Positions 7,986-62,708 of a stretch of DNA of 64,000 nucleotides are shown in pieces. How positions within the stretch are numbered: the stretch's first letter is position 1; the number at the start of each line of letters is the position of its first letter. The notes under the pieces were generated by a model, which saw nothing but the letters and a program-made list of their open reading frames with translations, was not told the origin of the DNA and ran no database searches. The translations under genes were made by a program, and so were the position numbers. The stretch is from positions 62,001 to 126,000 of IMG/VR virus record IMGVR_UViG_3300045973_000169. One strand, given 5' to 3'.

Positions 7986-8481
7986 TATATTATTACATAT
8001 AAGTGGACCTTGTTTTAGTGGAAAGACTTATTTATTATCTCATTTAATTGAAGATTTTGCTGGGTTTAATGTTATCACTTTTGAAAAACATTTTGATAGT
8101 GATAATAAAACATTAAAACAAATGTATGGTCATTTCTATCAGGATATATTTAATACACTTGAAACATCTAATGTTATAGGTGAAAGTATATATAGTTCTA
8201 GTAATAAGATTCTTTATTGTAAGTTTAAGAATTTAATTAATATAGTTACATATCCAGATTATGAACATCATAAAAAGAACTATGATAGGTTTGTTGAGAA
8301 ATTTGGGAGTAGGGTAGCTAATAAAAGAACTGGGGGTTCATCAATTAGCTTTCTAAGGAATGATTTTATAACGAAGGGCTGTCCTCCTAATAAGATCCTA
8401 TATGATGGAAAGAATTATAATACTGTTAAAGAAGAGATAAAAAATGTATTTAGAAAATATAACAATTATAAAGCAATCTGA
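7960..8481 (+). CDS. P-loop kinase-like protein
   Basis: ISGPCFSGKT Walker A. Confidence 0.6.
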   Translation: MMELNQTGNILLHISGPCFSGKTYLLSHLIEDFAGFNVITFEKHFDSDNKTLKQMYGHFYQDIFNTLETSNVIGESIYSSSNKILYCKFKNLINIVTYPDYEHHKKNYDRFVEKFGSRVANKRTGGSSISFLRNDFITKGCPPNKILYDGKNYNTVKEEIKNVFRKYNNYKAI

Positions 8482-20228: not shown

Positions 20229-20999
20229 ATGCAAGATAGAGAATATATAATTTATTGTTTTTTAGATGAGAATAATAAACCTTATTATGTTGGACAAACT
20301 TATAATCTTAAGATGAGATTAAATGCCCATAATCAATTTATTTTAGATATTGAAGAAAAAAGATTACCATCTAAATACCCATATTATCGTAAGGCTAGAG
20401 ATTTATTTAAAAATGGTATAGGATTAAAAGTAAATATATTAGAAAATAATCTTACCAAAAAAGAAGCAGACTTAAAAGAGTCTGAATATATTAGTAAGTT
20501 TAGAAATGATATTTCCTGTAAGTTATTAAATATTTTAGCTGGTGGTGAATTTAATCAAAGAAATAAATTTGTGTCTGATGAAACAAAAAAGAAAATAAGT
20601 GAATCTAAAAAAGGGAAAAAACTTACAGAAAAACATAAAGAGTCTTTAAGAAATTGTGATAGGAAACAAAGGAACTGGACAGAAGAAGATAAAATTAAAT
20701 ATGCTAAAATGGCAAAAATAAATTTATTGAATAAACAAACTCCAGAGAGTATTGAAAAGATGCGTCAGTCTAAAGTTGGGCAAAAACATTCTGAAGAAAC
20801 TAAAAGTAAAATAGCAAGATTTGGGAAAGATCATAAAAGAGCAAAGCACTATTTGATTATTGCCCCAGATGGGACTAATTACGATATTCATGGACTTTCT
20901 TCTTTTTGTAAAGAATTTGATTTAAACCAAAGTGGACTATGGCATGCTCTTAATAAAGGAAATGGTAAATATAAGGGATGGCAAATTCAAGAACTGTAA
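20229..20999 (+). CDS. GIY-YIG homing endonuclease with NUMOD3 repeats
   Basis: IIYCF...YYVGQT..R...E...LLN; SDETKKKIS / HSEETKSKI repeats. Confidence 0.9.
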   Translation: MQDREYIIYCFLDENNKPYYVGQTYNLKMRLNAHNQFILDIEEKRLPSKYPYYRKARDLFKNGIGLKVNILENNLTKKEADLKESEYISKFRNDISCKLLNILAGGEFNQRNKFVSDETKKKISESKKGKKLTEKHKESLRNCDRKQRNWTEEDKIKYAKMAKINLLNKQTPESIEKMRQSKVGQKHSEETKSKIARFGKDHKRAKHYLIIAPDGTNYDIHGLSSFCKEFDLNQSGLWHALNKGNGKYKGWQIQEL

Positions 21000-22168
21000 A
21001 GTTAATTTATGTAAATGGGATTGGGGCTAACAATAATAAGTTCTATGATATGATCGATACAGAAGACGGATATTTTACTATTAAATATGGTCGAGTAGGA
21101 TCTACTGAAACTGTAGATAAGAAAGCTATTGGTAAATGGGATTCTGTATATAGAGAGAAGACTCGTAAGGGTTATAAAGATATTACTAAGTTGTATATAG
21201 AAGAGAAAGTGGATGTAGTTGATTTTGCTGATATTAGTGATTATGCTATTAAAGAGATAATTGCTAAATTGCAAGCTTATTCTAAGAAACAAGTAACTAC
21301 ATTCTATACTATCTCTGCTGAAAAAGTAACTAAGAAACAAGTAGATGAAGCTCAAACTATTTTAGATGGATTGATCCCATGTAAAGATGTTGAGTGTGCC
21401 AATAAGCTACTTATTGATTTATACTCTGTTATACCTAGAGCTATGAGTCATGTTAAGCATCATTTACTTTCTAGTTTTGAACAGAAAACTCTTGATAATA
21501 TGATAGCTAGAGAACAATCTATTCTTGACTCAATGGCTTCTTCTGTTAAGCAGGTTGAACTTGTAAGAGAGAATATAGATTCTAGTAAGACTTTACTTGA
21601 TGCTCTTGGTGTAGAAGTATATCAAACAATGCCTAGTGATGTAGATCTTATTAAAATGAAATTAGATAACTTAGTTGATAGATATTTGAACTCATTTAGA
21701 GTAGTTAACAAAAAGACTCAGGTTAAGTTTGATAATTTTGTAAATAAAATTGATAACAAAAAGACAGAGTTATTCTGGCATGGGAGTAGAAATGAAAACT
21801 GGATTTCAATACTTGAAACTGGTTTGGTCTTACGTCCGACCAATGCTGTTATTTCTGGGAAGATGTTTGGGTATGGCACCTACTTCGCAGACAAGGCTCA
21901 AAAATCCCTAGGATATACCTCTTCTTATGGTTCACTGTGGGCTAAAGGAAGTTCTAATGAAGCCTATATGTCATTGTTTGATGTCCATGTTGGGAATCAA
22001 TATATAGTTGAACAGAGTGAATCTAACCTTGATGCACAAAAGTTAAAGGCTAAAGGTAACTTTCATTCTACTTTTGCTAAAGCTGGTAGATCATTAATGA
22101 ACAATGAATATATTGTTTATGATGAAGATCAATCTACAATTAAATATCTTGTACAATTAAAAGGATAA
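20978..22168 (+). CDS. WGR-domain PARP-like ADP-ribosyltransferase
   Basis: NKFY...YGRVG (WGR); LY..IP regulatory-like region; catalytic WHGS, GKMFGYGTYFAD..KS.GY, NEYIVY (H-Y-E triad). Confidence 0.9.
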   Translation: MANSRTVKLIYVNGIGANNNKFYDMIDTEDGYFTIKYGRVGSTETVDKKAIGKWDSVYREKTRKGYKDITKLYIEEKVDVVDFADISDYAIKEIIAKLQAYSKKQVTTFYTISAEKVTKKQVDEAQTILDGLIPCKDVECANKLLIDLYSVIPRAMSHVKHHLLSSFEQKTLDNMIAREQSILDSMASSVKQVELVRENIDSSKTLLDALGVEVYQTMPSDVDLIKMKLDNLVDRYLNSFRVVNKKTQVKFDNFVNKIDNKKTELFWHGSRNENWISILETGLVLRPTNAVISGKMFGYGTYFADKAQKSLGYTSSYGSLWAKGSSNEAYMSLFDVHVGNQYIVEQSESNLDAQKLKAKGNFHSTFAKAGRSLMNNEYIVYDEDQSTIKYLVQLKG

Positions 22169-23517: not shown

Positions 23518-23742
23518 ATGAAAACTCTAATGATTACACTATTCTCGTTCCTCGCAACGACCACTCAAGCTCTGGCCGCTACGGGGTTACGAGAAGATAA
23601 CAGTGGTATTTTTGTATGGGTATTTTTGGGCTTTTGTTCATTAATAGTTTTAATGCAAATGGTACCTGCATTCATCCTTGGTTCAAGTATGTTGCGAGCT
23701 GCTATCTCAAGTACCAAAGAGCAAACTGTTAAAAATAGTTGA
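23518..23742 (+). CDS. small membrane protein resembling a Geobacterales/Desulfuromonadia hypothetical family
   Basis: Signal-like N-terminus, then G.REDNSGI.VWVFLGFC.LIV..Q.VPA; less AT-biased codons than neighbours; recognised from memory only. Confidence 0.55.
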   Translation: MKTLMITLFSFLATTTQALAATGLREDNSGIFVWVFLGFCSLIVLMQMVPAFILGSSMLRAAISSTKEQTVKNS

Positions 23743-23866
23743 TAAAACTTATAGCTTAGTTTCCTAGATAAACTAAGTTGTAATATTAAGAAACATAGGT
23801 TAATAAGTATTATAGTTATTAACATTTATAAAGGGTCAAACATACCCTAAACTAAAGGAATATATT

Positions 23867-23974
23867 ATGCAAGTCCTACGCCAGTTACATTGTGATTATA
23901 GTAAACAACTCATTAATAATGAGAATTGGACAACTGTATCCTATGTATTTGCAGGACCAGGTACAACCACATAA
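23867..23974 (+). CDS. 35-aa leader peptide containing all 20 amino acids
   Basis: SD aaagga; MQVLRQLHCDYSKQLINNENWTTVSYVFAGPGTTT*. Confidence 0.7.
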   Translation: MQVLRQLHCDYSKQLINNENWTTVSYVFAGPGTTT

Positions 23975-23980
23975 TATAAA

Positions 23981-24036
23981 TCCCGACATTTAAAAGATAC
24001 TTACAAAGGCTCTAACTAAATGTTGGGGCCTTTTTT
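23981..24036 (+). promoter_or_regulatory. terminator/antiterminator switch (attenuator) upstream of tRNA array
   Basis: Terminator aaaggctctaac/gttggggccttt + T6; competing helix cccgacattta (23982-23992) / taaatgttggg (24017-24027). Confidence 0.75.
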
Positions 24037-24062
24037 CGTTGCTGTTTCGGCAACATTTATTT

Positions 24063-24229
24063 TAGTAGTTTTTCGTGGCTCCATTAAGAAGGCACCGGAT
24101 ATTAGATTTTACAGACTCCACGCTATTGATTGAATCTGAATTCAATCATATCGCGTAGCCCTTAAAAATCTAAGATCCTAGCCTTATTAAAAGATCCCCG
24201 ATGTAAAGCCCAGTAGAGCTTATCTACTA
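24063..24229 (+). ncRNA. long hairpin RNA with central bubble (6S-like shape, unassigned)
   Basis: Nested helices aaggc/gcctt, ggat/atcc, ttagatttt/aaaatctaa, bubble, cgc/gcg, tgattgaat/attcaatca. Confidence 0.5.
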
Positions 24230-24235
24230 CTTTAC

Positions 24236-24318
24236 GGATCATGAGGAGCATAGGTGACTCTAGACGGCTGTAACCCGTTGCCTCACGGTACCCTGTTCGA
24301 ACCGGGGATGATCCACCA
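24236..24318 (+). tRNA. tRNA-Tyr(GTA)
   Basis: Cloverleaf, gacgg-ctGTAac-ccgtt, encoded CCA. Confidence 0.9.
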
Positions 24319-24328
24319 ATAATATTAA

Positions 24329-24402
24329 CAGTGTGTACCGGGAGTCTGGTCCCCGCCTTGCCTTGGACGCAAGAAACGCAGGTTCAAATCCTGCCGCACT
24401 GA
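24329..24402 (+). tRNA. tRNA-Pro(TGG)
   Basis: cttgc-ctTGGac-gcaag; T-arm gcagg-ttcaaat-cctgc. Confidence 0.88.
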
Positions 24403-24480
24403 CATTGCCTTTTGACCCAATCATAGGGTTTAGACCAAAGTAGTTATTAACAATTAGAAATAAATTCTAGGAGTTATATT

Positions 24481-25077
24481 ATGCTGTGTTACTATGGTTG
24501 TGGTCAAGAGGCCGGGTTTGAATTAAAGAATGGAAGACATATATGTTCTTCATCATCAAATCAATGTCCAGTACAAAAAAAGAAAAATTCAGAGAATAGT
24601 AATAATAGATATTTTAAAATTAATGCCTCTGCTATTAAAAGTAAATGTAAGTTCTGTAACAAAGAGATTTCATCTACTAGTATTAAAGTTCATGAATTAA
24701 ATTGTTTTCTTAATCCAGAAAATATTAAATTATGTCCTGTATGTAATAAGCCAATTAAAAATTTTAGAAAATCAAATACATGCTCTTATGGTTGTTCGAA
24801 TACATTTTTTAGAAGCGGTAAAGATCATCCAAATTGGAAAGAGGATATAGATTGTGGATATAGAAAAATATGTTTTAGTGTCCATAAAAAAGAATGTATT
24901 ATATGTGGAGAAGTTAAAATAGTTGCAGTACATCATTTTGATGAAAATAAAAATAATAATAATATTGATAATTTAATTCCTTTATGTCCTACACACCATG
25001 TATATTGGCATTCAGGATATAAAAATGAAATTGAACAAAAAGTAATTGATTATAGAAATAAATTTAAATCTGCTTAA
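24481..25077 (+). CDS. HNH homing endonuclease
   Basis: HPNWK, CIICG...VHH.DEN..NN...NLIPLCPTHH. Confidence 0.9.
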   Translation: MLCYYGCGQEAGFELKNGRHICSSSSNQCPVQKKKNSENSNNRYFKINASAIKSKCKFCNKEISSTSIKVHELNCFLNPENIKLCPVCNKPIKNFRKSNTCSYGCSNTFFRSGKDHPNWKEDIDCGYRKICFSVHKKECIICGEVKIVAVHHFDENKNNNNIDNLIPLCPTHHVYWHSGYKNEIEQKVIDYRNKFKSA

Positions 25078-25173
25078 GTTCCAGTACATTCAATTATGCT
25101 GGGGAACGAGCACTAAAGAAGTGTAAGCTGAGTCTAAGAATGAGAGGTAGGTTGGCAGATTTAATAATAATGT

Positions 25174-25246
25174 TGCGGATTGTAAGTAATGGTTAACGAA
25201 AAGGCTCATAACCTTCTTCTTGTGAGTTCGAGTCTCGCATCCGCTA
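25174..25246 (+). tRNA. tRNA-Met(CAT), initiator-like 1:72 mismatch
   Basis: aagg-ctCATaa-cctt; T-arm gtgag-ttcgagt-ctcgc. Confidence 0.8.
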
Positions 25247-25269
25247 CTATGTTATTTTAGAGGAGGAAT

Positions 25270-25602
25270 ATGGAAAAGGCTTGTAAACATCATGGATTAA
25301 CTAAGTTTAGTCTACAAAAGTCAAATGGCAGAGAAACTTATTATTGTGTTAAATGTTATATGGAAAGACAGAATCGTACAAGGAATAATAAGAAAGAACA
25401 AGCTTTAACCTATAAAGGTGGTAAATGTTCAATCTGTGGGTATGATAAATGCAGTGCTGCTTTAGATTTCCATCATCTTAATCCTCTAGAAAAAGAAAGT
25501 AAAAATGATTTAAGAAATCTATCATGGGATAGATTAAAGATTGAACTTGATAAATGCATTCTTGTATGTGCTAATTGTCATAGAGAAATACATTTTAAAT
25601 AA
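25270..25602 (+). CDS. HNH endonuclease
   Basis: GGKCSICGY...ALDFHH..P..K...LVCANCHREIH. Confidence 0.9.
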   Translation: MEKACKHHGLTKFSLQKSNGRETYYCVKCYMERQNRTRNNKKEQALTYKGGKCSICGYDKCSAALDFHHLNPLEKESKNDLRNLSWDRLKIELDKCILVCANCHREIHFK

Positions 25603-25607
25603 GATAT

Positions 25608-25682
25608 GCACCGTGGGACGGCAGGAGTGGTCAGTAGCCTTTCACGCTACTCAGATGGGTTCGATACCCATACGGTGTACCA
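25608..25682 (+). tRNA. tRNA-Glu(TTC)
   Basis: gtagc-ctTTCac-gctac; CCA. Confidence 0.9.
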
Positions 25683-25686
25683 ATAA

Positions 25687-25764
25687 GCGGATGTACAGGT
25701 GAAGGGGCCACCAGGAGCCTTCCAAGCTTCAGATCGCGGGGTTCGACTCCCCACATCCGCTCCA
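25687..25764 (+). tRNA. tRNA-Gly(TCC)
   Basis: ggagc-ctTCCaa-gcttc; CCA. Confidence 0.88.
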
Positions 25765-25768
25765 AATT

Positions 25769-25844
25769 GCCTTTATAGCTCAGTGTGTAGAGCGTAGCCC
25801 TGAAGAGGCTAGCGTCCGGGGTTCGAATCCCTGTGAAGGCACCA
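25769..25844 (+). tRNA. tRNA-Phe(GAA)
   Basis: tagcc-ctGAAga-ggcta; CCA. Confidence 0.92.
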
Positions 25845-25849
25845 TTAAT

Positions 25850-25930
25850 GCCCTAGTAGCCACCGAAACTACGAATTTCGAGTTAGGTAATGGACTGCAA
25901 ATGCTAGTTCGAATCTAGTCTGGGGCTCCA
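25850..25930 (+). tRNA. atypical tRNA-Arg(ACG), no canonical D-arm, long variable region
   Basis: Acceptor gccctag/ctggggc, cgaaa-ctACGaa-tttcg, T-arm gctag-ttcgaat-ctagt, CCA. Confidence 0.7.
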
Positions 25931-25936
25931 AAATAT

Positions 25937-26023
25937 AGTACGGTGTCCGAGTGGCTGAAGGAACTGGTCTCCAAAACCAGAGAGATGACTCCAACGTGGG
26001 TTCGAATCCTACCCGTACTGCCA
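25937..26023 (+). tRNA. tRNA-Trp(CCA) with long variable arm
   Basis: ctggt-ctCCAaa-accag; variable arm gag-atga-ctc; CCA. Confidence 0.85.
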
Positions 26024-26041
26024 AATTAAAAAGGAAATAAA

Positions 26042-26419
26042 ATGCAAAAATTGGTTAGTAGTAAAGAAGAATATGTAAATATGAATGACTTTGTTTATGA
26101 TAAAAAGAAAATTTATGTTTATAGGCAGATAACTCCTAAGTTTGATAACTCAAGTGAGAAAGAAGTAAAATGGGGAATATTCTCTGAACATGCTGGTGAG
26201 TATGGTGGATATGGATTCATCATGTTAGGTAATTGTTCTAATGGATGGACATCTAAGCCAGAATGGAATAAAGATGTTAAAGAATATTTTTCTAAGATGA
26301 TTAAAAATAGCGGTTGTACTATAAGTGATATTTTAATTTTTAAAGATCTTAAAGATTTTTTAGGTTGGATGTCATATGAAGTTGGTGGTACAATTGGTTA
26401 TTTAAAATATTGTGAATAG
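26042..26419 (+). CDS. hypothetical protein within tRNA array
   Basis: ORF with SD aagga. Confidence 0.6.
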   Translation: MQKLVSSKEEYVNMNDFVYDKKKIYVYRQITPKFDNSSEKEVKWGIFSEHAGEYGGYGFIMLGNCSNGWTSKPEWNKDVKEYFSKMIKNSGCTISDILIFKDLKDFLGWMSYEVGGTIGYLKYCE

Positions 26420-26424
26420 TAAAT

Positions 26425-26520
26425 GGAAGAGCTGACCTCAAAGGCAGCGGGGCCCAGTCTTGAAAACTGGTAGCCGTCAGCAATGGCGGCGTGAGGGTTC
26501 GAATCCCTACTCTTCCTCCA
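26425..26520 (+). tRNA. tRNA-Ser(TGA)
   Basis: ccagt-ctTGAaa-actgg; long variable arm; CCA. Confidence 0.9.
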
Positions 26521-26526
26521 TTAAAT

Positions 26527-26558
26527 AGAAGGTTACCCAAGAGGACAAAGAGAAGTTC
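26527..26558 (+). pseudogene. orphan 5' fragment of a tRNA-Ser-type gene
   Basis: agaaggttacccaagagg..aagagaag resembles a Ser tRNA 5' half; ends just before GTTATTAACA. Confidence 0.55.
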
Positions 26559-26596
26559 CGTTATTAACACTTAGGTATAATCTAAGGAGTTAATAT

Positions 26597-27115
26597 ATGA
26601 AAATCTGCTTAAAATGTAATAAAGAGTTTAAGTCTTCTGGTATTATAGATGGCACTAAAAAGAAATTTGGGAATAGAAAATATTGTCTTGAGTGTTCTCC
26701 ATGGGGAAAGCATAATACACAGCCTCTTATAGAAACTGGGAAAATTAAAGAAGAGATAAGTGAACGTAGATGTTCAAGGTGCAATGAGGCAAAAGATATA
26801 TCTAGTTTTTATAGAAGTGGAGAAAAGCTTCTATCTATTTGTAAAGAATGCCATAAGAAATTAAGTAAAAAACTCTATGATGCTAAGATTGCTTCAATGG
26901 ATGAGTATAAGGCTAATTTAGGATGCTCAAAATGTGGGGATAAGAGACCTTATGTTTTAGATTTTCATCACAAAGATCCTCAAGAAAAAGAATTTTCTAT
27001 TTCTGATAAAGCCAGAGCGTCATTAGTTGTATTGTCAAAAGAACTTGAGAAATGTGTTTGTTTGTGTGCTAATTGCCATAGAGAAGAACATTATTTACTA
27101 AAAATGGAAGGGTAG
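26597..27115 (+). CDS. HNH homing endonuclease; last codons overlap tRNA-Ser(GCT)
   Basis: CSKCG...VLDFHH.DP..K...CLCANCHREEH. Confidence 0.9.
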   Translation: MKICLKCNKEFKSSGIIDGTKKKFGNRKYCLECSPWGKHNTQPLIETGKIKEEISERRCSRCNEAKDISSFYRSGEKLLSICKECHKKLSKKLYDAKIASMDEYKANLGCSKCGDKRPYVLDFHHKDPQEKEFSISDKARASLVVLSKELEKCVCLCANCHREEHYLLKMEG

Positions 27116-27193
27116 CCTAATTGGTAGGGAAGCTGTTTGCTAAACAGTCGGGATGTAAAAGTTCTGCGGGTTCAAGTCCCGCTCCTTCCTCCA
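27106..27193 (+). tRNA. tRNA-Ser(GCT)
   Basis: gctgt-ttGCTaa-acagt; long variable arm; CCA. Confidence 0.88.
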
Positions 27194-27212
27194 GCCTTCT
27201 GCCAAAAGTTTT

Positions 27213-27291
27213 GGTCTGTTAGTTTAGTCTGGCCTAAAGCACCTGCCTGTCGAGCAGGTTATCATCGGTTCAAATCCGATACAGACCGCCA
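27213..27291 (+). tRNA. tRNA-Asp(GTC)
   Basis: cctgc-ctGTCga-gcagg; CCA. Confidence 0.9.
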
Positions 27292-27299
27292 TACATTTA

Positions 27300-27375
27300 G
27301 GGGAATTAGCTCATTTGGTAGAGCAGGGGCTTTGCAAGTCTCAGGTGATCAGTTCGACTCTGATATTCTCCACCA
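27300..27375 (+). tRNA. tRNA-Ala(TGC)
   Basis: G3-U70 pair, ggggc-ttTGCaa-gtctc; CCA. Confidence 0.92.
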
Positions 27376-27381
27376 TAATAA

Positions 27382-27579
27382 AAGGGGTTAGTCCAGCGTG
27401 GTCAAAATTGCTTTAACATAAGGAGACATCCTAGTTCTAGTAAGATTTGATATTTTGAAATATGAGAATATTAGTAACCTTGGATCGTATGCCAATGAAG
27501 TGCTAAAAAGGTAATAAAGTAGACTTAAGACATTTACATTAAATTGTAATGAACATTGGTTAGAGTCCAGTACCCTTTG
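27382..27579 (+). ncRNA. miniature tmRNA-like / tRNA-like RNA
   Basis: Acceptor aaggggt/acccttt with G3-U, T-arm attgg-ttagagt-ccagt, P2-like helix attgctttaa/ttaaattgtaat, ~120-nt interior. Confidence 0.5.
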
Positions 27580-27583
27580 TCGA

Positions 27584-27662
27584 ATTTGTTTGTCTGGCCT
27601 GATTGGGAAGCACCTCCCTTACAAGGAGGCATATATAGGTTCGAATCCTATGACAAATACCA
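27584..27662 (+). tRNA. tRNA-Val(TAC)
   Basis: cctcc-ctTACaa-ggagg; CCA. Confidence 0.85.
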
Positions 27663-27663
27663 T

Positions 27664-27739
27664 AGTCTCATAGCTCAATTGGTAGAGCACCGCCCTGATA
27701 AGGCGGAGGTCGACGGTTCGAATCCATCTGAGGCTACCA
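27664..27739 (+). tRNA. tRNA-Ile(GAT)
   Basis: ccgcc-ctGATaa-ggcgg; CCA. Confidence 0.92.
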
Positions 27740-27743
27740 TTAT

Positions 27744-27819
27744 TGCCTCTTAGCTCAGTTGGTAGAGCATCAGATTTTGATTCTGAGTGTCGTGTGTTCG
27801 AATCACACAGGGGCTTCCA
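27744..27819 (+). tRNA. tRNA-Gln(TTG)
   Basis: tcaga-ttTTGat-tctga; CCA. Confidence 0.9.
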
Positions 27820-27823
27820 AAAT

Positions 27824-27899
27824 GCCGGTGTAGCTCAGTCGTTAGAGCGCCTCCCTTGTAAGGAGGATGTCGCGGGTTAGATTCCTGTCTCCGGCTCCA
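27824..27899 (+). tRNA. tRNA-Thr(TGT)
   Basis: cctcc-ctTGTaa-ggagg; CCA. Confidence 0.9.
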
Positions 27900-27907
27900 A
27901 AATATGT

Positions 27908-27993
27908 GGTGACTTAACGCAACGTGGATAGCGGTTCGACTGTGACTCGAATGCCGAAAGGATTACCGAGTTCGAATCTCGGAGGTCACACCA
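27908..27993 (+). tRNA. tRNA-His(GTG) with extended variable arm
   Basis: ttcga-ctGTGac-tcgaa; G-1; variable cc-gaaa-gg; CCA. Confidence 0.85.
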
Positions 27994-28380
27994 AATTAAA
28001 AAGGAAATAAAATGAGAAATATTAAAATCTCACATATTGCAAGTAATCATGTTGACTTTACATGTTGGAATTGTTATACATCTTTTGACTTAGAAGTTGG
28101 AGATGAAGTTATATGTCCTAAATGTAAAAATGTTCCTAGGGGAAAATAAAATGAATTATAGAATTGAACCAGTAGAATTTGTTAGACCTCGAAGTTGGGG
28201 GGATGTAGATCCTGTTACAAAAGAATTAACTGGTAGATATAAAGGGAAAACTCCTGGAGCATGTCAACCTGATGAATCTGTTATAACAGAAGAAAATGGA
28301 TTTACTGATATAGTTGTGCTAGGGCCTGGATTTAGTCCTGCAGAATATATTAGAAATAAAGAATTAAATAAGTAGTTTGT

Positions 28381-28413
28381 GGCTGGGTGGCGGAATGGTA
28401 GACGCAGCAGCCT
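28381..28413 (+). pseudogene. orphan 5' half of a tRNA-Leu-type gene
   Basis: ggctggg-tg-gcg-gaatggtaga-cgc-a-gcagc-ct stops at the anticodon loop, 3 nt before GTTATTAACA. Confidence 0.75.
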
Positions 28414-28451
28414 ATGGTTATTAACATGTATCCCTAAATCAAGAGGTACAT

Positions 28452-28895
28452 GTGAGAATTGATATACTAGAAAGAAAAAATGAAATTTTAATATGGATTT
28501 CAGAAAATAAATCAAAAGAATTTATCGCTAGAAAACTTAATTGTAAAAATGAAACATTAACCTCATATCTTAAAAAAATGGGGATTGAATATTATGGGAA
28601 TAAATCTGGCAAAGGTATGGCAGATTTAAAGACTAGGAAAAGTGCATTAGAATATCTCAAAGGCACTTATATTAAATCCCATCTTCTTAAATTAAAATTA
28701 ATAGAAGACAAAATAAAAGAACATAAATGCGAAAGATGCTTAATTTCTACATGGTTTGAACAATTGATTCCTTTAGAATTACATCATAAAGATGGAAACC
28801 ATTATAACAATGAATTAATAAATCTTGAATTATTATGCCCAAATTGCCATGCACAGTGTGATAATAATTCAGGGAAAGCAGTAAGAAAGAAATAA
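28452..28895 (+). CDS. HNH homing endonuclease
   Basis: KCERC...PLELHHKDGNHYNNELINLELLCPNCH. Confidence 0.92.
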   Translation: MRIDILERKNEILIWISENKSKEFIARKLNCKNETLTSYLKKMGIEYYGNKSGKGMADLKTRKSALEYLKGTYIKSHLLKLKLIEDKIKEHKCERCLISTWFEQLIPLELHHKDGNHYNNELINLELLCPNCHAQCDNNSGKAVRKK

Positions 28896-28898
28896 TTT

Positions 28899-28984
28899 GC
28901 CGGAGTGGTGGAATGGCAGACACCCCAGACTTAGAATCTGGTGTCCGTAAGGGCGTACTGGTTCGAGTCCAGTCTTCGGTACCA
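28899..28984 (+). tRNA. tRNA-Leu(TAG)
   Basis: ccaga-ctTAGaa-tctgg; long variable arm; CCA. Confidence 0.92.
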
Positions 28985-28992
28985 AATAAATA

Positions 28993-29058
28993 AGAGAAGT
29001 TACAGCAAACATTATATAAACTTTGACTTTAACTCAAACATAAAATAAATACTTCTCT
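28993..29058 (+). ncRNA. small anticodon-stem-loop mimic (UUA loop)
   Basis: agagaagt/acttctct closing stem, ACAGCAA, tttga-ctTTAac-tcaaa; no D or T arm. Confidence 0.45.
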
Positions 29059-29224
29059 GTCTTTTTTAATGGATAATGTTTAGTTATCTAGTTTTTAACT
29101 CTGTGGAGTGCTCGGTAATCCGTTGAATTCTCAACCGCTTAAATCGCACTCCTTCCACCATAACAAGCCATGGTGGAAATAAGAGATAGGAGTAATCCTA
29201 TTTTTTTTATAATTTTTAAAATAT

Positions 29225-29311
29225 TCCTCAGTGGTGAAATTGGTAGCCACAGCACACTGTTAATGTGCCGACGAAAGTCAACTGCTCGTTCGAGTCGGGC
29301 CTGGGGAGCCA
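29225..29311 (+). tRNA. tRNA-Asn(GTT) with extended variable arm
   Basis: gcaca-ctGTTaa-tgtgc; variable gac-gaaa-gtc; CCA. Confidence 0.88.
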
Positions 29312-41932: not shown

Positions 41933-42721
41933 ATGAAAGTTAAGTTAATTCATGCTACTCCATTAGATATCTTAGTTCAGGCTATCCGTAAATGCTATGA
42001 TAGTGGAAGTAAAAGTGATTCTGGATACTTTGAAAAGAATGAACAACTATTAGTTAATGAGAAGTATAAGTATAGATTAGGCGAGAAAGATGAAGCTCTC
42101 ATTAAGAGAGTAATTGAAGCTGGACATACATCTACTCTTGAACATATTAATTTTACATTTGACCTAGGTGGATACAGCAGAGCTTTATTGCAAGAGAAAT
42201 CACGTCATCGTCATGCTGCTGTAAGTGAACGTTCAACTAGATATTGTTTAAAGAAGCTCAAGGATATTAAGTCTTTAGTTACTGTACAAAGATTTCCATC
42301 TGGACAAGAAATCTTTATGTGTAATAAGCAAGAAGCTGCAAAGTATCTTGTTCTTACTGGAGATGAGGATGTAGACAATCTTTCTATTGAGGCTCTTGAT
42401 AGACTAAGACAATTGCTTGTTCGTAAACCTGAGCTTCGTAATGATGTAGCTAAATATCCTATTCCTGATTCATTGAGAACAGAATGTATCTTTACTATTA
42501 ATGCTAGGAGTCTAAGGAATTTATTTAGTCTTAGGATCAGTAAACAGGCTTTATGGGAATTCCAAAAGTTATGTTGCTATATGTATGAATCAATCCCTTT
42601 CCCATATAAATTTCTAGTTGATGATTTAGTTAATAAAGAGATATATGAATTCTGGATGGGTAGTGACAAACCAGCAGATGGTGGTCATGCTAACTTGTTT
42701 GAGAGGTATTATAGAGTATGA
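41933..42721 (+). CDS. thyX: flavin-dependent thymidylate synthase
   Basis: GHTSTLEH, SRALLQE.SRHR...SERSTRY, NARSLRN..SLR....A.WE. Confidence 0.93.
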   Translation: MKVKLIHATPLDILVQAIRKCYDSGSKSDSGYFEKNEQLLVNEKYKYRLGEKDEALIKRVIEAGHTSTLEHINFTFDLGGYSRALLQEKSRHRHAAVSERSTRYCLKKLKDIKSLVTVQRFPSGQEIFMCNKQEAAKYLVLTGDEDVDNLSIEALDRLRQLLVRKPELRNDVAKYPIPDSLRTECIFTINARSLRNLFSLRISKQALWEFQKLCCYMYESIPFPYKFLVDDLVNKEIYEFWMGSDKPADGGHANLFERYYRV

Positions 42722-43890
42722 GTACTTGTGTCCCGCTTCATGTTCATTCTGAAGGTTCAGTAAGAGATAGCATTAATAAAATATCAAATTATGTACAAAA
42801 ATGTGTTGAACTAAAATATACTGCTGCTAGTATTTCAGATCATGGATTCATGGGATATAATTATAAGTTCTATAAAGAATGTAAAAAGTATAATATAAAA
42901 CCTATTCTTGGACAAGAATTCTATTATACCCATGATAGAGCTGATAAGGGGTTAAATTATCATTTAGTCTTATACGCCATGAATGAGAAAGGGTATCAGA
43001 ACCTATGTAAATTAAGTTCTGACGCGTTTATTAATGGATTCTATAGGAAGGCTAGGACAGATAAAACAATCCTTGCAGAGTACTCTGAAGGCTTAATTTG
43101 CACTCCTGCTTGCTGCTTTGGTATGGCACAACAATATATTGTAAATGGTGAGATGGATAATGCAATCCAAGAAGTAAAAGATTTACAATCTATCTTTAAA
43201 GAGAATTTCTATCTTGAGATTCATGATCATGGGATTGAAGATGAAATTAAAATTAAGGATGAGTTTCGTAATATAGGGAATGACTTAAATATTAAAGTAG
43301 TCCCTGGAATTGATGTCCATTATACTAATAAAGAAGATCAGAAGATTCATGGTATCTTTAAGAATATTGCTTATGCTTCTGGAGGAGAAAAGGATAGTTC
43401 CTTTAATGGGACTGATTTCCATGTTCTATCTCCTGAAGAGATGGCAGTTAAATTTACTAAAGAAGAATTAGATAATACTCTTGAAATAGCAGATAAGTGT
43501 AATGTAGATTTTAAATTTACTGGTTACTTCTTACCTACATATGATATTCCTGAAAAAGAGTTTGATACATATGAATATCTTAGAACTATATGCTTCAGAG
43601 AACTTAAAAAGAAAGGTTTAGATTCTAACCCTCTATATGTAGAGAGATTAGAGTTTGAACTTAATATGCTCCATCTGGCTGACTTAGAGAACTATCTTCT
43701 TATAGTGTCTGACTATTGTAATTGGGCTAAGAATAATGATGTCCCTGTTGGACCTGGACGAGGATCTATGGGTGGTTCTATTGTAAGTTGGTTAACCAAT
43801 ATTACAGGAGTTGATCCTTTGAAATATGACTTACTTTTTGCAAGAGCTATCAACCCAGGTAGAAGTTTACAATTTGATTTTGGAGTCTAA
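42718..43890 (+). CDS. dnaE: DNA polymerase III alpha, N-terminal piece (PHP + start of palm)
   Basis: LHVHS..S..D, SDHG, KPILGQE, HL, DVHY, GPGRGS, ITGVDPLKYDLLFARAINPGR, then stop. Confidence 0.9.
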   Translation: MSTCVPLHVHSEGSVRDSINKISNYVQKCVELKYTAASISDHGFMGYNYKFYKECKKYNIKPILGQEFYYTHDRADKGLNYHLVLYAMNEKGYQNLCKLSSDAFINGFYRKARTDKTILAEYSEGLICTPACCFGMAQQYIVNGEMDNAIQEVKDLQSIFKENFYLEIHDHGIEDEIKIKDEFRNIGNDLNIKVVPGIDVHYTNKEDQKIHGIFKNIAYASGGEKDSSFNGTDFHVLSPEEMAVKFTKEELDNTLEIADKCNVDFKFTGYFLPTYDIPEKEFDTYEYLRTICFRELKKKGLDSNPLYVERLEFELNMLHLADLENYLLIVSDYCNWAKNNDVPVGPGRGSMGGSIVSWLTNITGVDPLKYDLLFARAINPGRSLQFDFGV

Positions 43891-45538: not shown

Positions 45539-47893
45539 GTGATTAAATACCATATAGATAGACCTATAGTTGAATATGTACAAGCTAATGAACGTTTTTT
45601 AGAATTAGATGATAATGAACATATTACACTATATAATGAAATTAAAAATGCTGTTCTTCAAGGAATAGACGATAAAATATTAAGTAAAGTATTTGATGAA
45701 GCTCCCTATATGAATGATAGCAGTATTAATTCCTATCTATTATGGGTACTCCATTTGACAAAAGATAAGCCTACTGGATTACAGAAGATTAAATCTCCTG
45801 GATCTTATTGTGATATCGACTTAGACTTCTCTCAAGAGAAGAGAGAAAAAGTATTTGATTATCTTGCTGAGAAATATGGCTCTACTAGAGTAAGTCATAT
45901 TGCTACATTTGGAACTATGGGAGCCAAGGCTGCTATCAGAAACTCTGCTAGGGCCTTGAGCTACCCAACTGAACTCCAGAATAAAGTAGCTAAATTTATA
46001 TCAGATGAACCTAAAGCAACTATTCAAGGGAGTATTGATGCTTCTAAAGAATTCCAAGATATGATTAAGAAATCTGAACAAGTTCAACATATTATATCTG
46101 TTGCAAAGAAGCTGGAAGGATTACCTAATTCACTTAGTGTCCATGCTTCTGCTGGTATTATATCTGATGTTGCAACTACTGATAGAGTTCCGATGATGGT
46201 ATCTGCTAAGAAGAATGATCCTATCACTGGGATTAGTGGATCTAAAGTTGTTTCTCAATTTGATATGAAAGATGTTGAAAATGCTGGTTTATTAAAATAT
46301 GATATTCTTGGTCTTAAGACTCTTGATATTATAAATGAAACAGTTAAGATAATTAAAAGGAATAAGGATATAGATATCGATATTGAATCGATTGATATGA
46401 ATGATCCTGGAATCTATAAACTTCTTAATGCTGGACATGTAACTATAGTATTCCAATTTGATGGAACTGCTGCTGCATATCTACCTAAGATTAAACCTCA
46501 AAATATAGATGAAATATCAGACTTAACTTCAATACTCCGTCCCGGACCGATGAGCATGGGAATGGTTGAGAGGTATGCTGAAGCTAAATTTGAGAATAAG
46601 AAATATGAATATGAATTGAAAGATCAAGCTCTTATTGCTAAAGTTTGGGAAATATGTTATCGTTCATATGGATTAATGATATACCAAGAACAAACAATTA
46701 AATGTTTTGTTGAGATAGCAGGATTCAATGAAATCGCTGCTGATAATGCTAGAAGAGCTATGGGTAAAAAGTTACCTGAAGAGATGGCTAAATTAGAAGG
46801 AGCGTTTGTTGAAGGTGGAATTAAAAAAGGCTATAACGAGAATGACCTTAAGACTTTATTTAAAGGGATCGCTGGATTTGCAGAATATGGGTTTAATGCA
46901 TCGCATGCAGTATGTTATTCTTTTATTACTTGTCAAACTGCTTGGTTATCCCATTATTATCCGTTAGAGTTCTTTACTGCTGCTATGACTATTGATGCAG
47001 GGAATACTGATGATATTAGACGTTATATCAAATCAGCTAAAGAAAGAAATATAATTCTTTCACCTCCTGATATTAATAAATCTGATAGTATGTTTACTAT
47101 TAAAGACGAATCTATTGTTTTTGGACTTAATGCTATTAAAGGTGTTGGTCCATCTACATCGAAAAAGATTATGGCTCGTAGACCTAAAAAAGGATATACT
47201 TCTCTTGGTCATTTTATTAGGCGTAATCTCGATTTGATTAATTCAAAGATACTTGAATCATATACGAAAGCTGGATGTTTTAAATCATTTGGTTATAATA
47301 AGCAATCTGTTTTAAATAGTATCCAGAATATATTGGATTTTATTAGTGTCTTGAAAGAGTATGATAAGTACAATACTTTCTTTGATCTTTGTAACATCTC
47401 ACTTGACAATTTTATAGATTCATGTATAATGAAAGATTCCCAAAAAGAAGACACATTATCTTATGAGATTGATTCTTTAGGTCTTTATATTAGTAAACAT
47501 CCTATGGATGTATATGATCTTAAAGGAATGAATGATCCTTCTTTTGTAGAATATTATGAGAATGAAGATGAATTTATCACTATAGGGTGTCTATCTGGAA
47601 TAGAAGTTAGAAAGACTAAAGCCAAACTAAATATGTGTAAGTTTAATATTGCATCTAGCATGTATAATCTTCCATGTATTATATTTCCTAAAGCATATTC
47701 TAAATATGTTAATGACCCTACTATCGCTGAAGGTAGAATGGTATGTGTCCAAGGAAGAATAAAAATTTCTGATACTGGTAGAGAATTAATTGTGAATGAT
47801 ATTCATGATAATATCGATAGGTATCTTGTTAGAAAAGTAATTAATAAAAATGAGTTTCCAATAAACTCCAAATTAACATTTATATTAGGATAA
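45539..47893 (+). CDS. dnaE: DNA polymerase III alpha, C-terminal piece (palm/fingers/HhH/OB)
   Basis: CDIDLDF, HAS.G, KYDILGL.TL, RPGP, IYQEQ, RRAMGKK, YGFNASHA, PDIN.S, GL..IKGVG, OB fold. Confidence 0.92.
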   Translation: MIKYHIDRPIVEYVQANERFLELDDNEHITLYNEIKNAVLQGIDDKILSKVFDEAPYMNDSSINSYLLWVLHLTKDKPTGLQKIKSPGSYCDIDLDFSQEKREKVFDYLAEKYGSTRVSHIATFGTMGAKAAIRNSARALSYPTELQNKVAKFISDEPKATIQGSIDASKEFQDMIKKSEQVQHIISVAKKLEGLPNSLSVHASAGIISDVATTDRVPMMVSAKKNDPITGISGSKVVSQFDMKDVENAGLLKYDILGLKTLDIINETVKIIKRNKDIDIDIESIDMNDPGIYKLLNAGHVTIVFQFDGTAAAYLPKIKPQNIDEISDLTSILRPGPMSMGMVERYAEAKFENKKYEYELKDQALIAKVWEICYRSYGLMIYQEQTIKCFVEIAGFNEIAADNARRAMGKKLPEEMAKLEGAFVEGGIKKGYNENDLKTLFKGIAGFAEYGFNASHAVCYSFITCQTAWLSHYYPLEFFTAAMTIDAGNTDDIRRYIKSAKERNIILSPPDINKSDSMFTIKDESIVFGLNAIKGVGPSTSKKIMARRPKKGYTSLGHFIRRNLDLINSKILESYTKAGCFKSFGYNKQSVLNSIQNILDFISVLKEYDKYNTFFDLCNISLDNFIDSCIMKDSQKEDTLSYEIDSLGLYISKHPMDVYDLKGMNDPSFVEYYENEDEFITIGCLSGIEVRKTKAKLNMCKFNIASSMYNLPCIIFPKAYSKYVNDPTIAEGRMVCVQGRIKISDTGRELIVNDIHDNIDRYLVRKVINKNEFPINSKLTFILG

Positions 47894-51876: not shown

Positions 51877-52347
51877 GGAATAAATGAATTTTTTTAAAAA
51901 TAAGACTAACCTACAAAAGATTAGTGTATGTCTAGGTATTATAAAAGGCTGTATCTCTTTAGCTCTTTTAACTAATCTTGGCAACCCTGATTTTAAACAA
52001 TACGATCAAAAAGTACAAGACAACAATAGATTTGGAAGGAAGTTTTAATGGAAATTAATAAAGATAATATTGAATTATTTATAACAAATCAAGGACTTAT
52101 AATTGGAGAAAGACAACGTGCTTTTTCTGAAGTTGTTAGATTAATAAATCCTTTACTTCTTATTAAGAATAATTCTGGTATTTATTTAACTGATCTCTTT
52201 ATGGGAGAGCAATGGATTATAATCCCACACTCTTACTGTATGCAGATTTCAGTAAATGAAACAATTAAAGATGAATATATAAAAGAAGTAGAGAAAAATA
52301 ATAGCTCTATCATTCTTCCAAATGCAGATAAAAGGATCATTCTATAA

Positions 52348-61912: not shown

Positions 61913-62708
61913 AAATATGAAATTTTTAATACAAAAAGACTTCCCTACACAAAAAGATGCTGAAGAGATATTAGATATTGTTAGCCATTATCCTTATGAG
62001 ATATTAGATGTTGATCCATTTTCAAATGATACTTTATTTAATCTTAATGATAAAAACTATATTCCTTACTGTTCTACTTTTTTATTTGAAACATTATTCA
62101 AGTTAAATGTAATTGGATTAAACTACAATTTAAATACAGCAAGTTATGAAGTATTTACTTCTAATAGAAATGATATGCTTAATAATAATGTTTATAATAT
62201 TAAAGATGCTATTGAATTTTTATCTATTCAGCAAAAAGGAAAACTCTGGTTCTGTAAACCAGCTGAAAAAGCTAAGATCTTTACTGGTTCAGTTGAAGCT
62301 TCTGAAGAATGGGTTGAGTTTTTACAAGATAAAGTTGAATGCAAAAGCTCTGGATCATATAAATTAGAACTAGATACTAAACTAGTCTTAGATACTCCAA
62401 AAGTAATTTATTCTGAATACAGATGGTTTATCGTAGATAAAAAGATTATTTCTGGGAGTATGTATAAGAAGAATGGACAGTTGTTTTCTGAAGAAATTCT
62501 AGATCGAGATATGACTAAAGAGGCTCAAGAATTTGCAAACAAATGGTTGCCTAATGATAATTGTGTTATGGATTTAGCTTTAACTAAAGAAGGATTAAAA
62601 GTAGTAGAATTCAATTGTATAAATAGTTCAGGTTTTTATAAATGCAGTAAGTACAAAGTATTTAAAGCCTTATGGGGATACTTTAGTACTGGAGAAAATA
62701 ATGGTTAA
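61905..62708 (+). CDS. ATP-grasp (R2K-like) protein
   Basis: F.KP....K.FTG, EYRWFIV, VMD, VVEFNCINSSGFY. Confidence 0.8.
   Translation: MDKNMKFLIQKDFPTQKDAEEILDIVSHYPYEILDVDPFSNDTLFNLNDKNYIPYCSTFLFETLFKLNVIGLNYNLNTASYEVFTSNRNDMLNNNVYNIKDAIEFLSIQQKGKLWFCKPAEKAKIFTGSVEASEEWVEFLQDKVECKSSGSYKLELDTKLVLDTPKVIYSEYRWFIVDKKIISGSMYKKNGQLFSEEILDRDMTKEAQEFANKWLPNDNCVMDLALTKEGLKVVEFNCINSSGFYKCSKYKVFKALWGYFSTGENNG

Follow-up and report, generated by a model that had tools for sequence, protein, structure and literature searches.

A candidate leader-peptide attenuator in front of a phage tRNA array

A short ORF of 35 codons lies at the head of a tRNA gene array in an uncultured phage, and it uses all 20 amino acids. 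Why would so short an ORF be so diverse, and why does it sit just there, in front of a terminator that has an alternative fold? The original prediction held that the ORF is a leader peptide sensing all amino acids, in which stalling of a ribosome at any codon would prevent termination and switch on the array as a defence against tRNA destruction or starvation. We examined this locus in a stretch of 64,000 nucleotides (hereafter the window; positions 62,001 to 126,000 of IMG/VR record IMGVR_UViG_3300045973_000169), and then in related phages. We find that the leader holds at least one codon for each tRNA of the array, and that related phages carry unrelated leaders with the same property. The phage therefore probably turns on its tRNA genes when decoding of those codons slows down.

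The locus

The window is part of a 206,638-bp viral contig from a pond metagenome. It has about 30% G+C, and all but one of its 64 ORFs of at least 120 aa lie on the + strand. The neighbourhood encodes replication and nucleotide-metabolism proteins, a PARP-like protein, and several GIY-YIG and HNH endonucleases. Every sequence element on which the original prediction rested was recovered at its place, so the observation is confirmed, with two corrections: ARAGORN finds 17 tRNAs rather than the 19 proposed (two further candidates are weak), and the putative ncRNA at 24040-24235 matches no Rfam family (nor does the leader). The features are collected in Table 1.

Table 1. Features at the head of the tRNA array (positions in the window)
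Position	Strand	Feature	Description
20978-22168		PARP-like protein gene	
23753-23780	+	Hairpin after the upstream gene (stop at 23740-42)	8-bp inverted repeat, CTTAGTTT with AAACTAAG, read directly from the sequence; marks the likely end of the preceding transcription unit
23786-23824	+	Promoter region (promoter scan)	Sigma-70-like hexamers TTAAGA, 16 nt, TATTAT (23786-23813), followed directly by the phage motif GTTATTAACA (23815-23824)
23833-23859	+	5' untranslated region	Small hairpin (GGGT 23833-36 with ACCC 23844-47) and Shine-Dalgarno site AAAGGA (23854-59), 7 nt before the ATG
23867-23974	+	Leader ORF	35 codons, 28 different codons, all 20 amino acids; ATG at 23867, stop TAA at 23972-74; 262 nt upstream of the first tRNA
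23861-23978	+	Start/stop closing stem	TATATTATG (23861-69, including the ATG) with CATAATATA (23970-78, including the TAA), 9 Watson-Crick pairs enclosing the whole ORF in one hairpin
23982-23992	+	5' strand of the antiterminator	cccgacattta, starting 7 nt after the stop codon; pairs with taaatgttggg (24017-24027), the terminator loop plus the first 6 nt of its 3' arm
24005-24036	+	Intrinsic terminator	12-bp stem (24005-16 with 24022-33), 5-nt loop and T-run
24038-24054	+	Second, weaker hairpin with a T-rich tail	Could be a back-up terminator
24060-24235	+	Strongly structured stretch	Unknown identity, between the terminator and the first tRNA
24236-29311	+	tRNA array	17 tRNAs: Tyr, Pro, Glu, Gly, Phe, Trp, Ser (two), Asp, Ala, Val, Ile, Gln, Thr, His, Leu and Asn; HNH-type ORFs interspersed
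24443, 26560, 28417	+	Further GTTATTAACA motifs	Inside the array, upstream of ORFs; may be internal promoters
25176-25244		Weak tRNA candidate	
27506-27579		Weak tRNA candidate	

The motif GTTATTAACA has ten exact copies, all on the + strand and each 16-42 nt upstream of a start codon; several of these start codons belong to GIY-YIG or HNH endonuclease genes. It is probably a phage promoter element. The leader would then have its own transcription start, but the three copies inside the array may drive the downstream tRNAs independently.

Chance expectation of the codon content and the alternative helices

How often a 35-codon ORF drawn from genome codon usage would contain all 20 amino acids had been put forward with the prediction as a check on it. 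Drawing 34 codons from the coding usage of this genome gives all 20 with P=0.0014, and the leader is the only such ORF among 195 ATG-started ORFs (367 with any start codon) of 25-45 aa in the window. Taken alone this is suggestive but not decisive for a finding picked by eye, and the composition statistics are modest once this post-hoc selection is allowed for. Coverage of 16 out of 16 array amino acids has P=0.006 (joint P 0.0016). All 17 tRNAs can read at least one leader codon, and 30 of 34 codons are readable by array tRNAs; the window encodes both Ser tRNAs and the leader has both AGT and TCC. The four codons without a matching tRNA in the window are CGC, TTA, TGT and AAA (related phages keep Lys, Arg, Met and Leu(UAA) tRNAs in a second region; the rest of the present contig was not covered by this analysis).

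The terminator scores -16.9 kcal/mol (z-score -3.5 against shuffles). The alternative helix, which is mutually exclusive with it, scores -12.4 kcal/mol alone and -16.5 with its extension, making the two almost isoenergetic, and it is the minimum-energy fold while only bases up to 24027-24030 are available (i.e. until the last 3 nt of the terminator stem are included). As a duplex between 23975-24004 and 24017-24033 it scores -15.6 kcal/mol, a value reached by none of 3000 shuffles and by 0.34% of random genomic 30-mers from the window (P of about 0.003). The start/stop stem, which was not used to select the finding, is the longest among 616 ATG-ORFs of 12-60 codons in the window. Two other small ORFs have 8-bp start/stop stems (8069-8116 and 51928-51975), but they show no promoter motif, terminator or tRNA context, and 8069-8116 lies inside a longer ORF, so they were dismissed.

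No homologue of the window leader was found by blastn in GenBank phages or by blastn and tblastn in the PARP-linked relatives L003-L010 (L numbers denote loci fetched from related phages; only chance matches were seen), and in IMG/VR only the source contig was found. The neighbouring 107-aa protein found only itself among 5.8 billion proteins (the 35-aa peptide was not part of that search). The codons and helices of the window leader were consequently not tested by covariation. The 74-aa membrane protein encoded upstream has homologues of about 50% identity in Desulfuromonadales MAGs, which are not phage contexts.

Related phages carry non-homologous leaders that match their arrays

We then looked for phages related through the PARP gene (distant relatives, 42-46% identity), and in several of them a tRNA array follows PARP within 1-3.5 kb, as it does in the window. 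In L029/L030 and L031, a sigma-70-type promoter is followed by a leader of about 200 nt that ends in a hairpin with a U-run just before the first tRNA, and that leader contains a short ORF whose core residues are exactly the nine amino acids of the ten downstream tRNAs (joint P 1-2e-6 for L029 and L031). Homologues of the gene upstream of that leader were collected together with their DNA contexts, giving nine distinct leaders in uncultured phages: MFTFEHQDWYQENSL (L029), MFNFEHQENWYQEDSL (L031/L070), MFTFEHQNWYQEDSL (L069), MFTFEHQENWYQEDSL (L071), MFTFEHQHFEHQNWYQEDSL (L072), MFSFEHQNWYQEDSR (L073), MASFEHQNWYQEDSL (L094), MLFSFQHQNWYEEDTG (L093) and MYPYCSQHYFSNSQYWEHEEDPL (L074). The last two have a different residue order but the same composition. 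Direct alignment of the window leader with those of L029 and L031 showed no homology, and the upstream genes are also unrelated, so the relationship is one of architecture only.

Each of the nine has a host-type, sigma-70-type promoter (TTGACA in eight of nine) instead of the GTTATTAACA motif, a Shine-Dalgarno site that varies in sequence (GGTGG, AAGGA, GAGGG, AAGGAG, GGAGG, GGGAG) but keeps its place 5-8 nt before the ATG, and an ORF of 15-23 codons. The ORFs consist almost entirely of the 9-10 amino acids of the array's tRNAs (Ser, Tyr, Gln, Phe, Trp, Asn, Glu, His, Asp), and in every locus each distinct tRNA of the array can read at least one leader codon. L074 alone has tRNA-Cys in its array and alone has a Cys codon in its leader (joint P below 1e-6 for this divergent leader). 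Codon-level details agree: Ser codons are all UCN where only Ser(UGA) is encoded, and Gln and Glu appear with both the A-ending and the G-ending codon, with several arrays carrying both isoacceptors. In a scan of every ORF upstream of every tRNA sub-cluster in all loci fetched by then, only the window ORF (0.91) and these leaders (0.86-0.93) scored above 0.65.

The prediction had also named two properties to look for upstream of arrays in related phages, an all-20 composition conserved despite divergent sequence and covariation in both helices. The first was not seen in these leaders, which use only 9-10 amino acids, matching arrays that cover 9-10; the second was. Segment A lies directly after the stop codon (or within the last three codons in L074) and is complementary to B, and B is complementary to C, which is followed by a U-rich tail and then the array; the three segments derive from one near-palindrome. 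On an alignment of the nine leaders, A:B is 93% paired, with three positions changed on both sides, and B:C is 97% paired, with four positions and ten cells changed on both sides (none of 500 shuffles reaches its covariation score), while slid controls give 19-61% pairing. This is the textbook anatomy of an attenuator. Most of these leaders also have a start/stop stem, and in L073 the change of stop codon from TAA to TAG is matched by TTA to CTA upstream of the ATG.

Not every relative has such a leader. Loci L019, L020 and L075 lack one, and nothing convincing was found at the second, scattered tRNA region of the L070 phage or at the tRNA groups of phage T5, so the device is limited to certain lineages. 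The L029-type leader was searched for in IMG/VR, in GenBank phages and in 185,579 genomes; the 15 hits in the genome search were chance 19-mers. The tRNAs of the window and its relatives share no long exact words, and pattern searches based on tRNA sequence were for that reason not attempted.

A probable ribosome-mediated attenuator matched to the array

We conclude, with moderate confidence for the window element and with higher confidence for the family in the relatives, that this is a ribosome-mediated transcription attenuator that gates entry of RNA polymerase into the tRNA array. The interpretation offered with the original prediction is thus partly supported: a translated leader choosing between antiterminator and terminator, with its unusual codon content as the sensor, gains independent support from the relatives, but the leader is better described as a mirror of the array than as a sensor of all amino acids. 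The array in the window covers 16 amino acids, so a leader that mirrors it must be long and diverse, which explains the all-20 observation without requiring a design that senses every amino acid. Like the leaders of the relatives, the window leader sits at the head of the array with its own promoter and Shine-Dalgarno site, its ORF is closed by a start/stop stem, its antiterminator strand begins a few nucleotides after the stop, and a terminator follows.

In the working we propose, a transcript starts at the promoter and a ribosome loads at the Shine-Dalgarno site. If every codon is decoded quickly, the ribosome would reach the stop and cover the 7-nt spacer and the G+C-rich first bases of the antiterminator strand; the terminator would form and transcription would end. 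If the ribosome stalls earlier, at any codon whose charged tRNA is scarce, or if no ribosome loads, the strand would stay free, start pairing on the terminator loop before the terminator's 3' arm is available (a kinetic head start) and hold that arm, and polymerase would run on into the ncRNA and tRNA genes. Because the products are the tRNAs that read the leader, the circuit would be a negative feedback on decoding capacity. The sequence elements, their energies, their rarity by chance and the comparative pattern come from the analysis itself, whereas translation of the leader, the geometry of the ribosome, the kinetics and the biological purpose are our inference. No experiment or RNA data exist for this element (among public reads only DNA runs hold the sequence, one being the source pond metagenome and two others not covering the leader, so there are no variants and no transcripts), and the response of read-through to stalling was not measured. 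The link to anticodon nucleases and counter-defence is likewise only an inference, with circumstantial support from RtcB ligase genes inside or beside related arrays.

Several details bear on this model. A footprint reaching 12 nt past the first base of the stop codon (an assumed size) would cover only the first three bases, CCC, of the antiterminator strand; masking it raises the equilibrium probability of the terminator from 0.74 to 0.97. Whether a terminating ribosome occludes the strand was left undecided. No upstream partner for 23982-92 (an anti-antiterminator or pause hairpin of the trp 1:2 type) appears in the folds of the window, so an untranslated leader would read through; L074 does have such a partner, GGCGGAT upstream of its Shine-Dalgarno site. 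In the relatives (L069 is not counted in this folding) the terminator always wins at equilibrium and is far more stable, as it also is in trp, so antitermination there must be kinetic, which was not shown. The second hairpin after the terminator and the internal promoter-like motifs complicate the question of how much of the array is controlled: the switch may directly control only the ncRNA, tRNA-Tyr and tRNA-Pro.

Alternative explanations

The best surviving alternative, though still unlikely, is that the leader senses translation but has a narrower or different output, being either a general gauge of transcription-translation coupling or of overall translation shutdown, or a switch for only the ncRNA, tRNA-Tyr and tRNA-Pro with the rest of the array driven by internal promoters. 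The motifs inside the array agree with the latter, and since the antiterminator strand is free without a ribosome, any block of translation would give read-through. But a general gauge would not need a leader that covers every tRNA of the array, the restriction of the relatives' leaders to the array's amino acids argues for sensing of specific codons, and the HNH-type genes that carry the motifs look like later mobile insertions.

It is also unlikely that this is an ordinary small phage gene with its own promoter motif and an ordinary terminator, with the amino-acid diversity and the alternative helix being coincidences picked out by a reader looking for oddities. The same motif precedes nine ordinary genes, the ORF has a normal Shine-Dalgarno site, no homologue shows conservation, and the P value for all 20 amino acids is not extreme for a scan covering many windows. 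Against this stand the rank of the start/stop stem (first of 616), the rarity of the alternative helix, the position of the ORF exactly at the head of the array, and the unrelated leaders at the same position in related phages, with a composition match of P about 1e-6 and covarying switch helices.

The least likely reading, a structured non-coding 5' leader of the tRNA precursor (a processing, stability or pausing element) with an incidental ORF that is not decoded, draws on the folding of the whole ORF into one hairpin, on almost invariant third codon positions and a further conserved hairpin with a CCUCCC loop in the relatives (constraint at the nucleotide level) and on the stable RNAs of unknown function among the tRNAs of phage T5, but the match between codons and array tRNAs is specific to one reading frame, survives a complete reshuffling of residue order in L074 and L093 and includes Cys only where the array encodes tRNA-Cys, a Shine-Dalgarno site is kept at the right distance although its sequence varies, and invariant third positions are expected if codon identity is what is being sensed.

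Comparison with known systems

The leader-peptide attenuators of amino-acid operons (trpL, hisL, thrL, ilvL, leuL, pheL; review-type sources are PMC1183508 and PMC3082878) likewise have a short translated ORF in the 5' leader, regulatory codons tied to the product of the operon, a terminator competing with an antiterminator, and a stop codon placed so that a terminating ribosome blocks the antiterminator (here both the translation of the ORF and this role of the stop codon are only proposed). The thr and ilv leaders already sense two or three amino acids at once. In our case the regulated genes are tRNAs rather than biosynthetic enzymes, the leaders hold single codons for 9-20 different amino acids rather than runs of one, the antiterminator strand pairs with the terminator loop and 3' arm rather than the 5' arm, and a stem joining the start and stop codons is present instead of a 1:2 anti-antiterminator. 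The pheM leader of the pheST operon is a ribosome-mediated attenuator that controls a component of the translation machinery (an aminoacyl-tRNA synthetase) according to decoding of cognate codons, but it senses one amino acid and controls a protein gene.

T-box riboswitches also link tRNA status to an antiterminator/terminator choice upstream of translation-related genes, but they bind one uncharged tRNA directly and need no ribosome; no T-box hit appeared here in Rfam scans run at a permissive E-value. In the tRNA region of phage T5, tRNAs are interspersed with HNH endonuclease genes, small ORFs, many internal promoters and stable RNAs of unknown function, but no ORF matched to the array was found upstream of any T5 tRNA group.

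Implications for phage tRNA arrays

Leader-peptide attenuation is a known mechanism, and what is new here is the target (tRNA genes), the sensor (single codons listing the tRNAs of the array) and the geometry (an antiterminator that invades the terminator loop, and a start/stop stem). Literature searches and one full-text check found no earlier description of leader peptides before phage tRNA arrays, although most subscription journals fell outside what was searched and the absence is not proof of novelty. It is about as likely as not that these leaders represent a previously undescribed class of phage regulatory element, in which tRNA arrays are autoregulated by leader peptides acting as codon-by-codon mirrors of the array. 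A shortage of any one of the tRNAs the phage can supply, whether from codon demand, from decay of the host tRNA pool during infection or from anticodon nucleases (the RtcB ligase genes hint that tRNA damage is a relevant signal), would stall the pioneer ribosome and open the array. The window element would be the largest version, with 17 tRNAs, 16 amino acids sensed and all 20 present.

Why phages carry tRNA arrays is still debated, the proposals being codon compensation, replacement of a decaying host tRNA pool, and escape from tRNA-cleaving defences (PMC10264068, PMC11464382, PMC11555353), and how the arrays are regulated is largely unknown. A leader whose codons list the array's own tRNAs would supply a compact natural sensor of tRNA availability, and would extend classical attenuation from one to three amino acids up to 9-20, and from enzyme genes to tRNA genes. 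It would show that the phage measures decoding of exactly those codons and expresses the array on demand.

Other features of the window

The motif GTTATTAACA is found in ten exact copies in the window, each of them 16-42 nt upstream of a start codon, with no further conservation visible in the flanking sequence. Several of these copies precede GIY-YIG or HNH homing-endonuclease genes, and the motif is probably a phage-specific promoter element.

Between the terminator and tRNA-Tyr lies a strongly structured stretch of about 175 nt (a long imperfect hairpin plus a second hairpin), which matches no Rfam family; it recalls the stable RNAs of unknown function in the tRNA region of phage T5. Two weak tRNA-like candidates were also observed: the first has anticodon CAT and an Rfam tRNA score of 23 bits, whereas the second has an abnormal anticodon loop and a score of 14.8 bits. 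With these two, the number of tRNAs would reach the 19 of the original prediction.

The DNA polymerase III alpha subunit is split into two ORFs (PHP plus the start of the NTPase domain in one, the rest in the other), which are about 1.6 kb apart with other ORFs between them, perhaps due to the insertion of a mobile element. The 74-aa membrane protein encoded just upstream of the leader shares about 50% identity with homologues in Desulfuromonadales MAGs, a weak hint about the host or about the origin of the gene.

Coordinates of additional features in the window and in related phages (L-numbers denote loci of related phages)
Sequence	Position	Strand	Feature
Window	5858, 14390, 19125, 20189, 23815, 24443, 26560, 28417, 30094, 49283	+	Exact copies of GTTATTAACA
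Window	24060-24235		Structured stretch
Window	25176-25244		Weak tRNA-like candidate (first)
Window	27506-27579		Weak tRNA-like candidate (second)
Window	42718-43890 and 45539-47893		Split DNA polymerase III alpha subunit
Window	23518-23742		74-aa membrane protein
L029	9318-9352		Hairpin upstream of the leader ORF (equivalents in L031, L069, L071, L072, L073 and L094)
L074; L075; L092	11372-12592; 830-1990; 4697-6598		RtcB RNA ligase and TROVE (Ro-like) protein
L024	18891-18964		tRNA with anticodon CTA
L074; L092	749-821; 8631-8705		tRNA-Ile with anticodon AAT
L092	8592-8621		Nine-codon mini-ORF

Other features of related phages

In seven of the related phage loci, a conserved hairpin upstream of the leader ORF shows covarying stems and an invariant loop containing CCUCCC, which resembles an anti-Shine-Dalgarno sequence, and a conserved UUUAAGGAG follows the terminator. 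The two could pair across the whole leader, or the loop could mask the ribosome-binding site of the leader.

ARAGORN calls a tRNA that is a possible amber suppressor (anticodon CTA) in one relative, and tRNA-Ile with the unusual anticodon AAT in two others. In one of the latter (L092), a mini-ORF (MLTMIRKHL) ends 10 nt before tRNA-Ile(AAT) and covers six of the seven amino acids of the downstream tRNAs; however, it is too short, and too many ORFs were tested, for this to be significant, and no terminator follows it. Related phages carry an RtcB RNA ligase inside or near the tRNA array, and also a TROVE (Ro-like) protein among the tRNAs of a second region, which together suggest an RNA repair and quality-control module.
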